Source: Octopus sinensis
Taxonomy: Eukaryota
DNA: 64,000 nucleotides
Reading direction: 5' to 3'
Assembly (NCBI RefSeq): GCF_006345805.1
Contig: NC_042997.1
Span: 13,578,001 to 13,642,000 of the forward strand
Shown: positions 9,043-40,598 of the stretch, one piece after another
Position numbering within the stretch: position 1 is the first letter of the stretch
How the letters are laid out: every line of letters starts with the position of its first letter
Program-made: the position numbers and the translations under genes
Notes under the pieces: generated by a model
Told to the model about the DNA's origin: nothing
What the model saw: only the letters and a program-made list of their open reading frames with translations
The model's database searches: none

Positions 9043-9192
9043 ATGTCAACTTTCAATCCTTTCCGCATTCCATTCACCAAAACGTACGTGAATGCGACGC
9101 AGAACCTGCGCACGGTAAACTTCGGAATGAAAACGGTGGCAGTAGGACTAACTTTGATAATCTTACTGTTCCTGCCACGGATAAATTTGCAG
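9043..9192 (+). CDS. Gene 1 coding exon 1: signal-peptide-like MKTVAVGLTLIILLFLPRINLQ from ATG 9127; in-frame upstream ATG at 9043
   Basis: CAG|gtatgt donor at 9192/9193, phase 0; hydrophobic core VAVGLTLIILLFL. Confidence 0.65.
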
Positions 9193-9706
9193 GTATGTTG
9201 CAATTTTAGACAAAGTGCTGGTAACACAGGGCACAGCTGCCTGAGACTTTAAGTAGATTGTGGACCCTCAAATAGATTGTGAAATTGCATTTGTACATTC
9301 CCCCCTGTGGACAACGTTACTTATCAATGTATAGTTACTGCATATCAGGTTAGATACGTGTACGTAGTTACACTTTCAAATCAAGGCTGTTTGATCATAA
9401 TATGACTTTCAGAATCGAAGCTAGAGCTAGTAGCACTTTTTCATCTAAGATAATTTAGAAATGGAGGAAAGATTCGGTTGACTACAATATTAGGAGGTTT
9501 GCCATATTTTCCACCCACCCGCACTGCCAACTTATAACTCCAGTTATTTGTAGTTCTCCTATCTTGTTATATCCAAGGAGATATAGCACTTGTCTGAATC
9601 ATCGACAACAGAATAAATAACTTAGGTAGGTTTATATCTAGATGCAAATTCCAAGACACACGTCACTAGTAAAACTGAATATTAATATGAAAACATTAAA
9701 ACACTA

Positions 9707-10125
9707 ATCTTTTTTCTTTTTTTTTTTTTTACTTGTTTCAGTCATGTGACTGCGGCCATGCTGGAGCACCGCCTTTAGTCGAGCAAATCGACCCCGGGAC
9801 TTATTCTTTGTAAGCCCAGTACTTATTCTATCAGTCTCTTTTGCCGAACCGCTAAGTAACGGGGACGTAAACACACCAGCATCGGATGTCAAGCAATGTT
9901 AGGGGGACAAACACAGACACACAAACATACACACACACATATATATATATATATATATATACGACGGGCTTCTTTCAGTTTCCGTCTACCAAATCCACTC
10001 ACAAAGCATTGGTCGGCCCGGGGCTATAGCAGAAGACACTTGCCCAAGATGCCATGCAGTGGGACTGAACCTGGAACCATGTGGTTGGTAAGCAAGCTAC
10101 TTTCCACACAGCCACTCCTGCGCCT
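9707..10125 (-). mobile_element. SINE family A, young full-length copy
   Basis: Head AGGCGCAGGAGTGGCTGTGTGG (A box) ... GGTTCAGTCCC (B box), central microsatellite, near-identical to the 11164 copy. Confidence 0.92.
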
Positions 10126-10639
10126 GGAAATATTTATTTCATACTGCTTTTAACCAATCTTTTGTCATTAACTCCTTTCGGTCGCTGGATTACAGCCATA
10201 CTGGGACACCACTTTGAAGAGCTTTAGTCAAACAAATCGACTCTAATACTTACATTTTTAACGCCTGGTACTTGTTCTGTCAGATATCTTTGTCAAACTA
10301 CTATATAACGGGAATGTAAACAAACAAACCCTGCTTATCAAGCAGTGGGAGCGCAAACACATAGATATACATATATAGCTATGTACATATATATATATAT
10401 ATATAATATATATATATATATATATATATATATATATATATTATATATATATATATATATATATATATTATATATACATATATATATATACATATACATA
10501 TATATATATATACGAAGGTTTCTGTATGTGTGTGTATATATATGTATATAGTATATGTATATTTAATGCATGTGTATATGTATGTGTATCTATATATATA
10601 TATATATATATATATATATATATATATATATATATATAT

Positions 10640-10790
10640 ATACACGACGGGTTTCATCTATCAAATCCGCTTACAAAGCTTGGTCGACCGATCTTATAGT
10701 TGAAGGCATTTGCCTAAAATGCTACACAGTGGAAATTACCTCAGAGACATGTGACTGGAGAGCAAACTGCTGACTACATACATAGCCACG
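10640..10790 (-). mobile_element. SINE family A, decayed 5' half
   Basis: Diverged match to ACGACGGG...CAAATCC..AAAGCTTGGTCG...ACATAGCCACG. Confidence 0.6.
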
Positions 10791-11163
10791 CTTTTTTTTT
10801 TTTTGATTTCCAGTGTACAAACCTGCCACAGAGTGTTTCCTTTCTTTCAACTTAAAATATTCACCTTTTCACTGAACAAATTATGCAAACAACAATTTGT
10901 ATTAGTTCATAAATAGTCAAATATTTTCAAAAAATATTCTATACATTACGATCATAATAATTATTATTATTATGCAAAAAAATTGTAAATATCTAATCAA
11001 TTGTATATAGCTAACATCTATCGAACGGTAATTTAAAAAAAAAATATAGATGAAAACTAGGAATAAATGCATTCTCGCAAGCGACGTCACGAACATCTCT
11101 TCCACATTGTCATAACCTTCCGACAGAAGACAAAGGTCTACTTTTGCATTTCAGGAAATATTT

Positions 11164-37384: not shown

Positions 37385-37458
37385 ACTGGAAATGGCATTC
37401 AATGCCGTGATATTGAACGCTTTTCTTTTGCTTTCACACAGAGAACACTTTATGATGT
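37385..37458 (+). CDS. Gene 1 exon 4: TGNGIQCRDIERFSFAFTQRTLYD(V)
   Basis: ctactcttctattatgcag acceptor, GT|gtaagc donor; 74 nt, phase 0 to 2. Confidence 0.72.
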
Positions 37459-39759
37459 GTAAGCACTCATTTATTGTAACTATCGATATGACTAACCGCA
37501 ACCCCCTTTTGTAATTGCATTTAACAATGAAGTTAGTGAAAGACTTTATGATTTGCCCTGCATATGACTACTTTGGACTTTCTCAATTAACCAATTCATA
37601 ACTGCGTTATTAGATTTCCCCAACTCTCTGTACAATTGGTAAGGCCTAAACATCAATGATCTTCACCAATTAGTTTGGATGAAAGTGATTAACTGTACTG
37701 TCTTCGATTCAGCCGGCTTTTTTCTTTAATCATGATCTTCTACATCTATTAGGATACATTTTGCTTTATAATCTTCTTATGTCTGCCAGTTTGTCGCCTT
37801 TCTCTCCACTTGTCTTACTATTTCTTTCTGTATTCTGGTTTTGTTTTTATCTCTATAATTTTATCTTTTCTGTTAGCTATGAGAAAACATTTGTATGACG
37901 TTCCCACAGTGACTTCGTTTCCGTATAAGCTTCGTTACACTAAATTATACTTATTTTTCCTCCTTTTAAGAGTAATGGCACTAACAAGAACGGTAGCCAG
38001 AACAGTAACAATAAAAAATTGCTACTTCTACCTTCATTTTTATTTAGTCTAATTATATTCTTTGTCACATAACTTGTTATTAGTAATCTAGAGGAAATAT
38101 GTTCTCTGTAATGCAATCTGTATAATCAGTAAAAATAATTTCGAAAGAGCAACTCTGCTATAGATAACGTATTGGACAGTAAGTAGGATATTCATCTGAG
38201 AATGAAACAACTTTCAGATGGAACAAAATAGGATGTGATTGTCGTGAGATTAATTCTAAAAGAATATTCTGTAATATATTTATTTTCCTTTTAGAATTCC
38301 CACTTTCCATGACCAAACGAAAATGTAAAATGTTACATACTTAAGCTGAGTAATTCTATTCCCTACATAGTATTAATATATGAGAAAGGTATGCATTATC
38401 CAATAGTTGAGTACACGCAGTTTCAAACTAATTTCTCTCTTTTATATCATTTGCGCATTTCTTAATTTTTCTTTAGCGATGTAACAATGTAGTTAGAATT
38501 TTACGGTTATGTATTCTGCTATATAATAATTGTTCTAAACGCACAGCTTAAATCTGCTTCACTGCTTTACTACGCAAATGAATTAACAATTTCCTATCTT
38601 AGTCTACTCAAATAGATAATATTTAATAATCTCAATGAGCTGATAGATTCAATAAGATAATAAAAAAACTTTACGAAGTTACTATCAAATGAGCTCGTCA
38701 TAAATATTACTATAACTATTATTATAGACACTACTTATCATTCTCAGTCGTTAAAATAAAAATATAGAATTTATGAAATGCCAACGTAATTACCCATATA
38801 TGTTAGCTACATCTCTACATTCAGAGTTCAAATCATACTCATCTGGACTTTAATTTTCATACCCAGATGAAATGGAACGTTTCACTCCGTAACTTCATCT
38901 GCAATATAGATAAAAGCAGCTATATTCATTTTGTTTGAGTTAATTGATAAAACGCGATTAATTTATAAGTAAGCCATAGTTAAGCATAAAAACCTTTGTG
39001 AAAATCAAATGTGAAGGATCAAAGTCCTTGTAATCTGATGAATACAACTATTAATCATATATTAACTATTTATATAATCACTGCGTGCTATAATTATTTT
39101 GCATATTGTTACAAAATCAAACAGTATAGTGAAGTCAAATGAATTTGGCACTAGTATTTTGTCGGTCATGCATATGGCGACCATTCACTTAGTTATATAC
39201 TTCTAGTGTAGAAAGCACTGACCTTATAATATGATCAAACACATTCCACGTCCACACTTGAGTCCATACGTAGTGATATTTTTCTTTATTCGCATCCACT
39301 TCCCTTGTCATGATGTACTTGTACTTGTGGCGACATTCACCCTGGGAGGTTTGAGTCGGCTTCTTCCTTGGAAGACGTTTCGTGGGAATATGTGGATTTC
39401 ACAAGCGGTCCCCAACAATCCCGCATGTAGAGACATCCTGTTTGCCACAAATTGTCCACAGATGCAGGGACAAAACGACCGAGGAGCCGCCGGTTACCGA
39501 AACAGACGTTCCGAGGATTTTTACCAGAGCCCTGTCTGCCGGGTTGTGGCCCTAATACCACTGGGTGTCAGACCAATCCGCCCTGGGTGGCCCTACCAGG
39601 AACCGAAGTTCCCGACGGCATAGCTCTGACGCTACCCGTTGCTAGCGTCCCCACCATGATGGCTTTGGTATTTAGCAGCTTATCTTGTGGACGCAATATC
39701 ATTTCGCAATGTGATTTTAATTTAGTTTTACCTTTTATTAGTTTCTGTCAAACGACTCC

Positions 39760-40420
39760 CGCCATACTGAAACACTGCTTTTAAGGCTTAGTCGAACAAA
39801 TCAACTCGAATACTACTTTTTACGTCTGATACTTATTCAGTCGGTCTCTTTTCCAGTATGTTAAAGGGACATAAACAAACACCGACTTTCAAGTGATGAA
39901 GATGGGAAAAGACCACAGATACAAAGGCACTCTTACTAACACACACACACTCGCGCGTGCACTACCACCCATATATATATATATATATATATACACACGC
40001 TCTTCTACACAGTTTCCGTCAACCAAATTCTTATTTCTTTATTGCCCACAAAGGGCTAAACATAGAGGGGACAAACAAAGACAAACAAAGGGATTAAGTC
40101 GATTATATCGACCCAAGTGCGTAACTGGCACTTAATTTATCGACCCCGAAAGGATGAAAGGCAAAGTCGACCTCGGCACAATTTGAACTCATAACGTAAC
40201 GGCAGACGAAATACCGCTAAGCATTTCGCCTGGCGTGCTAACGATTCTGCTAGCTCGCTGCCTTGAACCAAATTCTATTACGAACCAAATTCTATTACGA
40301 AGCATTGCTTGGTTAGGGGCCACATCAGAAGACACTTGCTCAAGATACTGCGCAGCAACAATGAATCCGAACCCACATGGTTCAAAGCAACCTCCTTAGC
40401 AACACATTCATAACTTTGCC
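39760..40420 (-). mobile_element. Old SINE family A copy interrupted by a family B copy (40032-40265)
   Basis: Host head and tail blocks are recognisable; the insert is flanked by AACCAAATTCT at 40021-40031 and 40266-40276. Confidence 0.75.
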
Positions 40421-40495
40421 TATACGGAAATTTAGTTAGTAGTCATTTTGTGGTTTTTTAAAAAATATTTTGTCATAAGGTTTCTTTATCTACAG

Positions 40496-40598
40496 TTGTT
40501 GTAACTGCAACTCCTGTTTGACCTCCTTGACGACAAGGAAAACAGATTTGGATCTTGTTCGTAAAGCCAAATGTATTCCAGTTGGTCACTTTTGACTA
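40496..40598 (+). CDS. Gene 1 terminal coding exon: (V)CCNCNSCLTSLTTRKTDLDLVRKAKCIPVGHFD*
   Basis: gtttctttatctacag acceptor; phase 2 start matches exon 4; TAG at 40596-40598. Confidence 0.7.

Follow-up and report, generated by a model that had tools for sequence, protein, structure and literature searches.

A candidate Octopus-lineage orphan gene with five coding exons and a small predicted secretory product

In the 64,000-nucleotide stretch of Octopus sinensis DNA analysed here (the window), five small coding exons spread across 31.5 kb of repeat-rich DNA can be joined into a single reading frame (Table 1), and we read them, at about even confidence, as an orphan gene of the Octopus lineage that would encode a small secretory protein. 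A real multi-exon gene model at this locus is supported for at least exons 3 to 5, and exons 1 and 2 most likely form its true 5' end; the use of exons 1 and 2, secretion, disulfide formation and any biological role are what we infer from the sequence. For this reading we counted the verified ORF, the match to a predicted protein of Octopus vulgaris, the rank of exons 1 and 2 among possible upstream completions, splice-site strength, GC content and a well-placed hydrophobic core. Against it we counted the chains found in control sequences, the lack of any record of the exon-1 and exon-2 peptides, an intron-like divergence, a low-confidence structure prediction, atypical residues at positions -3 and -1 of the putative leader, and the chance that the public O. 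vulgaris model is ab initio only.

Exon structure and the Octopus vulgaris counterpart

The five exons were recovered as the initial annotation had described them: all introns are of the GT...AG type, the phases are 0, 1, 0 and 2, the spliced ORF is unbroken, and a pyrimidine-rich tract precedes each acceptor. An in-frame stop sits 16 codons upstream of ATG 9043. The product lengths given there, 154 and 126 aa, are corrected to 153 aa (from ATG 9043) and 125 aa (from ATG 9127), because a T had been dropped near the end; CAC TTT TGA reads H, F and stop, not HFD and stop, so that the C-terminus is VGHF and the coding sequence ends with the TGA listed in Table 1 instead of at 40598. The first AATAAA lies at 41329, 734 nt past the stop, and is uninformative, such signals occurring at 2.3 per kb. 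Exon GC is 0.43 versus 0.34 for the window, which we counted for a real gene. All five exons are single-copy in the window, where neither tblastn nor self-blastn revealed a paralogous exon. Nothing in it matched Rfam or was called as a tRNA, and among 18 other ORFs searched against Pfam the sole match was a weak one to GIY-YIG.

Table 1. Coding exons of the gene model and the alternative first exon (window coordinates; a slash marks the exon boundary)
Feature	Position	Strand	Remarks
Proposed coding exon 1	9043..9192	+	ATGs 9043 and 9127; donor CAG/gtatgt
Proposed coding exon 2	15905..15995	+	Phase 0 in, 1 out; acceptor ttttctcccag/, donor CCG/gtgaga
Coding exon 3	26141..26187	+	VVNILADAVTNAEGQK; spliced to exon 4 in O. 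vulgaris CAI9714926.1
Coding exon 4	37385..37458	+	TGNGIQCRDIERFSFAFTQRTLYD plus two bases of V121; carries C103; both junctions in CAI9714926.1
Coding exon 5	40496..40595	+	TGA 40593-40595; carries C122, C123, C125, C128, C147; in CAI9714926.1
Alternative 13-nt first coding exon	19619..19631	+	ATGTGTAAGGGAG/gtaagt; used by O. vulgaris model CAI9714926.1 (MCKG...)

The counterpart in O. vulgaris is CAI9714926.1 (A0AA36AGI7, A0AA36AGI7_OCTVU), a "Hypothetical predicted protein" of 77 aa that is 95% identical to residues 81-153 over 73 aa (E = 1e-37). Its gene lies on chromosome OX597814.1 of assembly GCA_951406725.2 and is syntenic and collinear with the locus described here; exons 3 to 5 match its last three coding exons base for base, and the 3/4 and 4/5 junctions are identical. 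By identity, synteny and junctions, the gene containing exons 3 to 5 is orthologous to CAI9714926.1. The two proteins differ in that CAI9714926.1 has RG for CC, N for T130 and T for A145. It also begins, in place of exons 1 and 2, with the 13-nt exon located in proposed intron 2, and it therefore carries no signal-like segment.

The comparison of the two genomes covers window positions 9443-50372, which hold exons 2 to 5, exon 1 being some 250 bp outside. Over these positions the DNA is collinear and the exons are 96.9-100% identical; the locus overall is about 97% identical over 41 kb, with 1.7% substitutions across the aligned DNA. Exon 2 is identical in O. vulgaris, but it is part of an identical stretch of 417 bp, and such stretches are common in the introns. 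The syntenic DNA of exon 3 is free of substitutions, with a gap of a single base in its flanks, and that of exon 4 is 100% identical. The 40.8-kb O. vulgaris locus carries no further gene call, which we also counted for the orphan-gene reading.

The initial annotation had called the gene hidden. This is so for only half of it, since the 3' 73 codons are already in GenBank and UniProt under O. vulgaris. The O. vulgaris annotation combines transcripts, protein alignments and ab initio predictions, and drew on Iso-Seq (PRJNA718058, PRJNA791920, PRJNA547720) and RNA-seq (E-MTAB-3957) data (PMC10700109). Because such a pipeline admits ab initio input, CAI9714926.1 may be ab initio only.

The 5' end of the gene and chance controls

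Exons 3 to 5 contain no methionine, and an upstream exon with an ATG is therefore needed. Splice sites were PWM-scored in bits and ranked against the sites of both strands (128 kb). The exon 1 donor ranked 23 of 7265 GT sites, the exon 2 acceptor was in the top 0.5% and its donor in the top 0.2%, and the exon 4 donor (TGT/gtaagc) was mediocre, in the top 11%. Over the whole chain, three of the donors ranked within the best 0.3% of all sites and three of the acceptors within the best 1.4%, and the sites of exons 1, 2, 3 (donor) and 5 are among the strongest of the 128 kb. When exon 3 was taken as an anchor, exons 1 and 2 ranked first of 1,054,974 in-phase two-exon completions upstream of it, and no other completion had 5.7 bits or more at each of its three splice sites; of the internal exons joining exon 3 in phase, exon 2 is the strongest, and exon 1 is its best partner.

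The public O. vulgaris model could instead be right as it is, with transcription from near 19.6 kb, the ATG at 19619, a 77-aa protein without a signal peptide, and exons 1 and 2 not part of the gene. We consider this improbable. The start structure is that of CAI9714926.1 itself, its donor at 19631 (GAG/gtaagt) has the top score of the region (7.68 bits), and the exon lies within a 264-bp run identical in both genomes. Set against this, a 13-nt initial exon giving MCKG is typical of a start codon supplied by a predictor, four to six cysteines would end up in the cytosol without a targeting signal, the exon adjoins a retroelement-like GIY-YIG ORF (on the opposite strand, 110 bp away), and the excellent acceptor and donor of exon 2 would be left unexplained. 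The O. vulgaris first exon, whose product carries no targeting signal, looks like a start-codon patch. As a cassette between exons 2 and 3, positions 19619-19631 were rejected: they have no usable acceptor and all substantial read-throughs from exon 2 hit a stop, the sole stop-free option being a 15-nt exon with a very poor acceptor (-7.6 bits), and for these reasons they are not usable as an internal coding exon.

Dynamic programming was used to find the best five-exon ATG-to-stop chain by summed splice score in control sequences. The five-exon chain described here scored 33.3 bits versus 39-45 bits for the best chains of the minus strand and of the reversed (uncomplemented) sequence. Because control sequences yield higher-scoring chains, the five-exon chain by itself does not rise above chance; 64 kb of sequence will always contain some like it. 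The controls favour the view that there is no functional protein at this locus, the model being either an artefact of gene prediction or a spliced transcript, non-coding or young, with a fortuitous, unconstrained ORF, and its exons having been picked for their open frame by the reader and by ab initio predictors. We regard this as rather unlikely. It gains from an annotation pipeline that accepts ab initio models, and it has to contend with two independent readings, the initial annotation and the CNAG pipeline, that give three exons identically, as well as with the strong splice sites of exons 1, 2, 3 (donor) and 5, the raised exon GC, and the coherent layout formed by a hydrophobic N-terminus and a Cys-bearing C-terminus.

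The predicted leader, processing sites and cysteines

In the orphan-gene reading that we prefer, translation would probably start at Met29 (ATG 9127), giving an n-region MKT, an h-region VAVGLTLIILLFL and a c-region PRINLQ/S. Exon 1 holds the sole hydrophobic segment of the product (residues 34-44, nt 9142-9174), with a core, VGLTLIILLFL, whose mean Kyte-Doolittle value is 3.08 over 11 residues; an equally hydrophobic stretch occurs in 6% of random ORFs of at least 50 aa in the window. As for the signal peptide proposed earlier, the hydrophobic core would fit one if the start is Met29, but the putative cleavage site follows N at -3 and Q at -1, which is atypical. Such a leader would send some 100 residues of basic polypeptide (13 K/R versus 8 D/E) into the secretory pathway, and would be either cleaved or kept as a short N-terminal anchor. 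In the C-terminal third, the four cysteines common with O. vulgaris could form two disulfides, and a vicinal CC pair that is not shared would be added to them. The protein would act extracellularly or in a lumen, as a secreted factor that is under little constraint or evolves fast. AlphaFold2, given a two-sequence alignment, returned a mean pLDDT of 41 and a pTM of 0.21, unstructured in confidence terms, a result that also suits the absence of a functional protein.

From the layout, the product had been proposed to be the precursor of a hormone, toxin or pheromone: a signal peptide would be followed by a pro-region free of Cys, with cleavage and amidation at IWKG-R, and then by a mature domain knotted by three disulfides. 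The hydrophobic N-terminus, the Cys-free middle, the cysteines in the last 51 residues and the basic mature part are consistent with it. The product has no KR or RR dibasic site, and its basic sites are a monobasic G-R at 76-77 and RK at 135 and 143, both RK pairs falling within the supposed mature domain. It contains no peptide that is repeated or conserved, no homologue lends support, no hormone, toxin or inhibitor family matched in Pfam or PDB, and no orthologue was found in any other mollusc or elsewhere outside Octopus. We therefore judge both the amidated pro-region and the neuropeptide, toxin or pheromone layout to be unsupported, and a precursor of this kind to be very improbable; the CC that reads RG in O. 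vulgaris also speaks against it.

The cysteine spacing C-x18-CC-x-C-x2-C-x18-C (C103, C122, C123, C125, C128 and C147) was correctly given in the initial annotation, and conservation of the six had been preset as the test of a three-disulfide domain. Only four of the six are kept in the sole relative, so that the domain fails this test. Exon 5 differs from O. vulgaris at four positions, 40497 T/C (C122R), 40500 T/G (C123G), 40522 C/A (T130N) and 40566 G/A (A145T), all nonsynonymous and none synonymous. The first two turn CC into RG (TGTTGT to CGTGGT), and C103, C125, C128 and C147 are common to both, in a shared pattern C-x21-C-x2-C-x18-C that is enough for two disulfides. A fixed three-disulfide framework is therefore not conserved even between near-identical genomes, and we find no support for a conserved domain of three disulfides of the hormone or toxin kind.

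Exons 2 to 5 show 4 changes in 312 nt versus 5.3 expected, a divergence the same as that of introns. This, together with four nonsynonymous and no synonymous changes and two cysteines lost or gained, is what would be expected if no functional protein were made. However, four of four nonsynonymous changes have a p of about 0.3 under neutrality, and the O. vulgaris genome, at 1.7% substitutions, is too close to demonstrate absent constraint or to measure selection. Conservation in it is uninformative: the introns often show identical runs of 400-900 bp, and empirically exons 2 to 4 would be free of differences in 6.7% of cases and exon 5 would have at least four mismatches in 10.9%. A more novel reading is that of a young, possibly de novo Octopus-specific gene for a secreted Cys peptide, for example a new family acting in venom, as a pheromone or in neural signalling, in which the disulfide framework would be changing between sister species and the vicinal pair would have been gained or lost under positive selection. 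We give this a slim chance.

Relatives of the product and significance

CAI9714926.1 was the sole relative found: phmmer, run exhaustively over 1.84 billion cluster representatives, gave none outside Octopus. A word-indexed search with the 153-aa product gave no match at all; even CAI9714926.1, at 95% identity, was recovered only by an alignment query. Negatives of the word-indexed search are thus weak, and the exhaustive phmmer search is the reliable negative. The exon-1 and exon-2 peptides are absent from about 15 billion predicted proteins, and the unspliced 69-aa ORF of exon 1 is on record nowhere. The collection holds only one similar predicted protein, so that annotations of other octopus genomes apparently lack the gene. 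A tandem-repeat protein of 1036 aa (E = 7e-6) was rejected as repeat-inflated noise, residues 54-80 being matched ten times at 37% identity. Pfam-A (hmmscan, E up to 10) returned only DUF4926 at E = 0.17, far below the cut-off, and phmmer against PDB sequences only a spurious match at E = 0.7. In the literature, we found no mention of the accessions or peptide strings. The lack of homologues and domains counts, like the single predicted relative, for the view that the locus makes no functional protein.

The earlier failure to assign the product to a family is borne out by the Pfam, PDB and phmmer searches. CHH/ITP and Kazal frameworks have no vicinal CC, and insulin has an A chain of CC-x3/4-C-x8-C plus two B-chain cysteines. 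With CHH/ITP, insulin-like and Kazal proteins the product has in common only the count of six cysteines in a small, putatively secreted protein; it differs from CHH/ITP, insulin/relaxin and Kazal in its spacings, in having no match to them in Pfam at E = 10, and in that two of its six cysteines are not conserved. It resembles the orphan small secreted Cys proteins of molluscs and other animals, in its short length, N-terminal hydrophobic leader, few cysteines in the mature part, lack of homologues beyond a narrow lineage and amino-acid changes between close relatives; these are a descriptive class and not a family, and secretion and disulfides are only predicted here.

Either outcome would be a result at the level of annotation, with no new mechanism. 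Should the gene turn out to be unexpressed or untranslated, it would show that an in-phase AG/GT chain is no evidence of a gene in genomes rich in AT and introns. Expression of the five-exon form would mean that the public O. vulgaris model is 5'-truncated and misses the signal peptide, and Octopus would have one more lineage-restricted secreted protein, of the kind thought to underlie cephalopod novelties. A whole cysteine pair differing between near-identical genomes would then make a small test case for the evolution of orphan secreted proteins.

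Splicing of the five exons and their standing against chance

The initial annotation had proposed five exons in phases 0, 1, 0, 2, and splicing by script reproduced all of them with their boundaries and phases. The spliced ORF is uninterrupted from ATG 9043 (or ATG 9127) to the TGA at 40593-40595. Its product has 153 aa (125 aa from Met29) and ends in CIPVGHF, instead of the claimed 154 or 126 aa ending in GHFD, because one T near the 3' end had been missed. The cysteine spacing was correctly described as C-x18-CC-x-C-x2-C-x18-C (C103, C122, C123, C125, C128 and C147). An in-frame stop lies 16 codons 5' of ATG 9043 and inspection by eye found no convincing acceptor 5' of this ATG, so that exon 1 looks like the first coding exon.

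Features of the window and their coordinates; the five exons were read and spliced by script, and slashes mark exon boundaries
Feature	Position	Strand	Remarks
Exon 1	9043-9192	+	3' boundary cag/GTATGT
Exon 2	15905-15995	+	boundaries cccag/.../GTGAGA
Exon 3	26141-26187	+	boundaries cttag/.../GTAAGA
Exon 4	37385-37458	+	boundaries tgcag/.../GTAAGC
Exon 5	40496-40595	+	5' boundary tacag/
Exon X	19619-19631		ATGTGTAAGGGAG/gtaagt; 10001-10013 of L001, the O. vulgaris locus
GIY-YIG-like ORF	19740-20090	-	116 aa
Low-complexity tract	44526-45337		purine/pyrimidine
Short interspersed element copy	8299-8580	+	translates to '...RPRKDERQSRPRRNLNSE...'
Short interspersed element copy	13368-13580	+	same translation
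Short interspersed element copy	36039-36452	-	same translation
Repeat family of ~400 bp, several copies	9711-10137, 11168-11592		seen in alignment of the window with the O. vulgaris locus
Another repeat family	11779-12138, 12418-12806, 24873-25275		seen in the same alignment
Stop-free stretch	31719-32573	+	
Stop-free stretch	49650-50011	-	
Stop-free stretch	60418-60693	+	

The splice sites were ranked among all 7265 GT and 6761 AG dinucleotides of both strands using a crude, generic metazoan matrix. Donors 9192, 15995 and 26187 fell in the top 0.2-0.3% and acceptors 15905, 40496 and 37385 in the top 0.5-1.4%, while acceptor 26141 and donor 37458 were mediocre (top 9-11%); the eight sites summed to 33.3 bits. 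When dynamic programming was used to find the highest-scoring chain of five exons from ATG to stop (exons of at least 45 nt, introns of at most 12 kb), the plus strand gave 41 bits and the minus strand 45, and the two reversed, uncomplemented controls gave 39 and 44. Alone, the five-exon chain is no better than chance. Any 64 kb of DNA at 34% GC will contain some in-phase AG/GT chain, and the proposed chain therefore needs outside support. The exon GC content (0.43 vs. 0.34 window-wide and 0.27-0.40 in flanking DNA) and the presence of each exon in one copy within the window give it mild internal support. That control sequences yield better-scoring chains favors the main alternative, in which there is no functional protein and the initial annotation and the gene predictors picked a fortuitous ORF for staying open; we regard this as rather unlikely.

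No other credible protein-coding gene was found in the window, nor any tRNA or Rfam family at gathering score. The overlapping ORFs of 128-224 aa in the long low-complexity tract are not genes; those of one strand encode poly-E/K/R and those of the other poly-F/L/S. Microsatellites are dense throughout and give rise to ORFs of the (TG)n type ('CVCVCV') and to others reading 'LSIYLSIY'. The three stop-free stretches resemble decayed retrotransposon ORFs (e.g. '...DVDRIYLKRKQGGRGL...'), and their only Pfam match was DUF3960 (E = 0.0023, below the cut-off); the short interspersed element copy at 8299-8580 had none.

The O. vulgaris counterpart and the 5' end

When 1.84 billion cluster representatives were searched exhaustively with phmmer, one real match emerged, a 77-aa protein with 95% identity to residues 81-153 (E = 1e-37). 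It is CAI9714926.1 (UniProt A0AA36AGI7), "Hypothetical predicted protein [Octopus vulgaris]", the sole member of its 90% cluster. Its sequence is MCKG + VVNILADAVTNAEGQK + TGNGIQCRDIERFSFAFTQRTLYDV + RGNCNSCLNSLTTRKTDLDLVRKTKCIPVGHF, the part after MCKG being exons 3, 4 and 5 joined at identical junctions. Its gene lies on chromosome OX597814.1 (assembly GCA_951406725.2), of which positions 31177628-31218413 (reversed) are collinear with 9443-50372 of the window at ~97% identity with gaps counted and 1.69% substitutions. The divergence is clumped, with many indels, and segments free of any difference, up to 900 bp long, are interspersed with microsatellite DNA rich in indels. This pattern points to a sister species such as O. 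sinensis, or a divergent haplotype, as the source of the window, and not to the O. vulgaris assembly itself. The exon match together with the collinear DNA indicates that the window is syntenic to the CAI9714926.1 locus, and the O. vulgaris annotation calls no other gene in the syntenic 40.8 kb. That annotation is an EVidenceModeler merge of StringTie/PASA transcripts, protein alignments and Augustus/GeneMark predictions (PMC10700109). Its predicted model was nevertheless derived independently and matches the initial annotation in three exons with single-base precision. The 3' half of the gene is already public, as a hypothetical protein.

The other match in the phmmer search, a tandem-repeat protein, was rejected as a relative, ten weak matches to residues 54-80 having inflated its score; that search gave no further relatives, and a profile query against 5.8 billion sequences found CAI9714926.1 alone. 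A word-indexed protein search with the single 153-aa query missed this 95%-identical 77-aa protein, which a two-sequence alignment query found, and single-sequence negatives from that search do not mean absence. The only Pfam-A family at E ≤10 was DUF4926 (E = 0.17), PDB sequences gave only a spurious match (E = 0.7), and nothing was found in the literature on the accessions or peptide strings. As far as these data go, the gene appears to be an orphan confined to the O. vulgaris species group; the lack of homologues also favors a fortuitous ORF.

The O. vulgaris model differs from the proposed chain in lacking exons 1 and 2; its coding sequence starts with a 13-nt exon (exon X) located within the proposed intron 2. 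The donor of exon X is the best of the region (7.68 bits), but none of the acceptors 5' of it is usable, their scores being -0.07 bits at most. Reading on in phase from exon 2 into exon X runs into a stop in every substantial case, and the sole stop-free option is a 15-nt exon with an acceptor of -7.6 bits. The absent acceptor and the stops rule out exon X as an internal coding exon, which leaves two possibilities, an alternative first exon or a start codon that the predictor supplied. On the opposite strand, 110 bp from exon X, an ORF weakly matches the GIY-YIG nuclease family (PF01541, E = 3.3e-4; 21.3 bits, slightly below the cut-off of 22.6 bits). A Penelope-like retroelement probably left this ORF behind, and thus exon X may be repeat-derived. 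We consider it improbable that the public 77-aa form is the correct one.

Since exons 3-5 contain no Met, an upstream ATG exon is needed. All pairs of a first exon beginning at an ATG and one internal exon that enter exon 3 in phase were enumerated over the 26 kb upstream. Among the 1,054,974 completions, exons 1 and 2 ranked first and were the only pair with all three sites at 5.7 bits or more. Among internal exons upstream of exon 3, exon 2 is clearly the strongest, and no first exon pairs with it as well as exon 1, which leads by 2 bits. The unspliced ORF of exon 1 has no match on record, and no protein with exon 1 or exon 2 peptides was present in the protein collection searched. On balance, we slightly favor a predicted transcript that uses exons 1-2.

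Cysteine divergence and the predicted product

At the start of exon 5, O. vulgaris has T/CGT GGT AAC TGC where the window has T/TGT TGT AAC TGC, and C122 and C123 are R and G in O. vulgaris. Only C103, C125, C128 and C147 (C-x21-C-x2-C-x18-C) are common to both genomes. The initial annotation had itself taken a lack of conservation of the six cysteines as refuting, and on that ground its three-disulfide domain does not survive this comparison. Either the CC pair is not structural or the fold is not fixed, because losing differently bonded vicinal cysteines would leave two free thiols. The remaining differences in exon 5 are T130N and A145T, and all four are nonsynonymous (p ~0.3 under neutrality). 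The comparison covered exons 2-5, exon 1 lying ~250 bp past the end of the O. vulgaris locus, and counted 4 substitutions in 312 nt vs. 5.3 expected at the non-exon rate. The empirical chance of zero differences across exons 2-4 was 6.7%, and that of at least four in exon 5 (100 nt) was 10.9%; introns often contain identical runs of 400-900 bp. The two sequences are too similar to reveal purifying or positive selection, and divergence that looks neutral is a further point in favor of there being no functional protein.

The only hydrophobic segment of the predicted protein is VGLTLIILLFL at residues 34-44 (mean Kyte-Doolittle 3.08); beyond residue 50 the best 11-residue stretch scores 1.49. From Met29, the n-region (MKT) is textbook, the h-region has 13 residues and the c-region (PRINLQ/S) is atypical. 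A putative cleavable signal peptide is likelier than a type II anchor, because an h-region of this length would not span a membrane comfortably. The evidence from this segment is modest, since 6% of random ORFs of at least 50 aa in this T-rich window contain an equally hydrophobic stretch. The other 103 residues are basic (13 K/R vs. 8 D/E), and the only N-x-S/T sequon, at residue 17, precedes the hydrophobic core. AlphaFold2 with the two-sequence alignment was uninformative on the fold (mean pLDDT 41, pTM 0.21). The 153-aa product has no KR/RR site; its two RK pairs, at 135 and 143, fall within the cysteine region, and a monobasic G-R occurs once, at 76-77. Without processing sites, family matches or a conserved cysteine framework, the prohormone or toxin precursor of the initial annotation is the least probable of the readings.

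We give about even credence to a lineage-restricted five-exon gene, of which the public O. vulgaris model would be a 5'-truncated form. Its small basic product would enter the secretory pathway, carry at most two conserved disulfides and act outside the cell or in the lumen. What may be new is the 5' extension, with its signal-like leader, together with the cysteine-pair difference between near-identical genomes. The value of the finding lies at the level of annotation, as an orphan gene for a putative small secreted protein, of a familiar kind.
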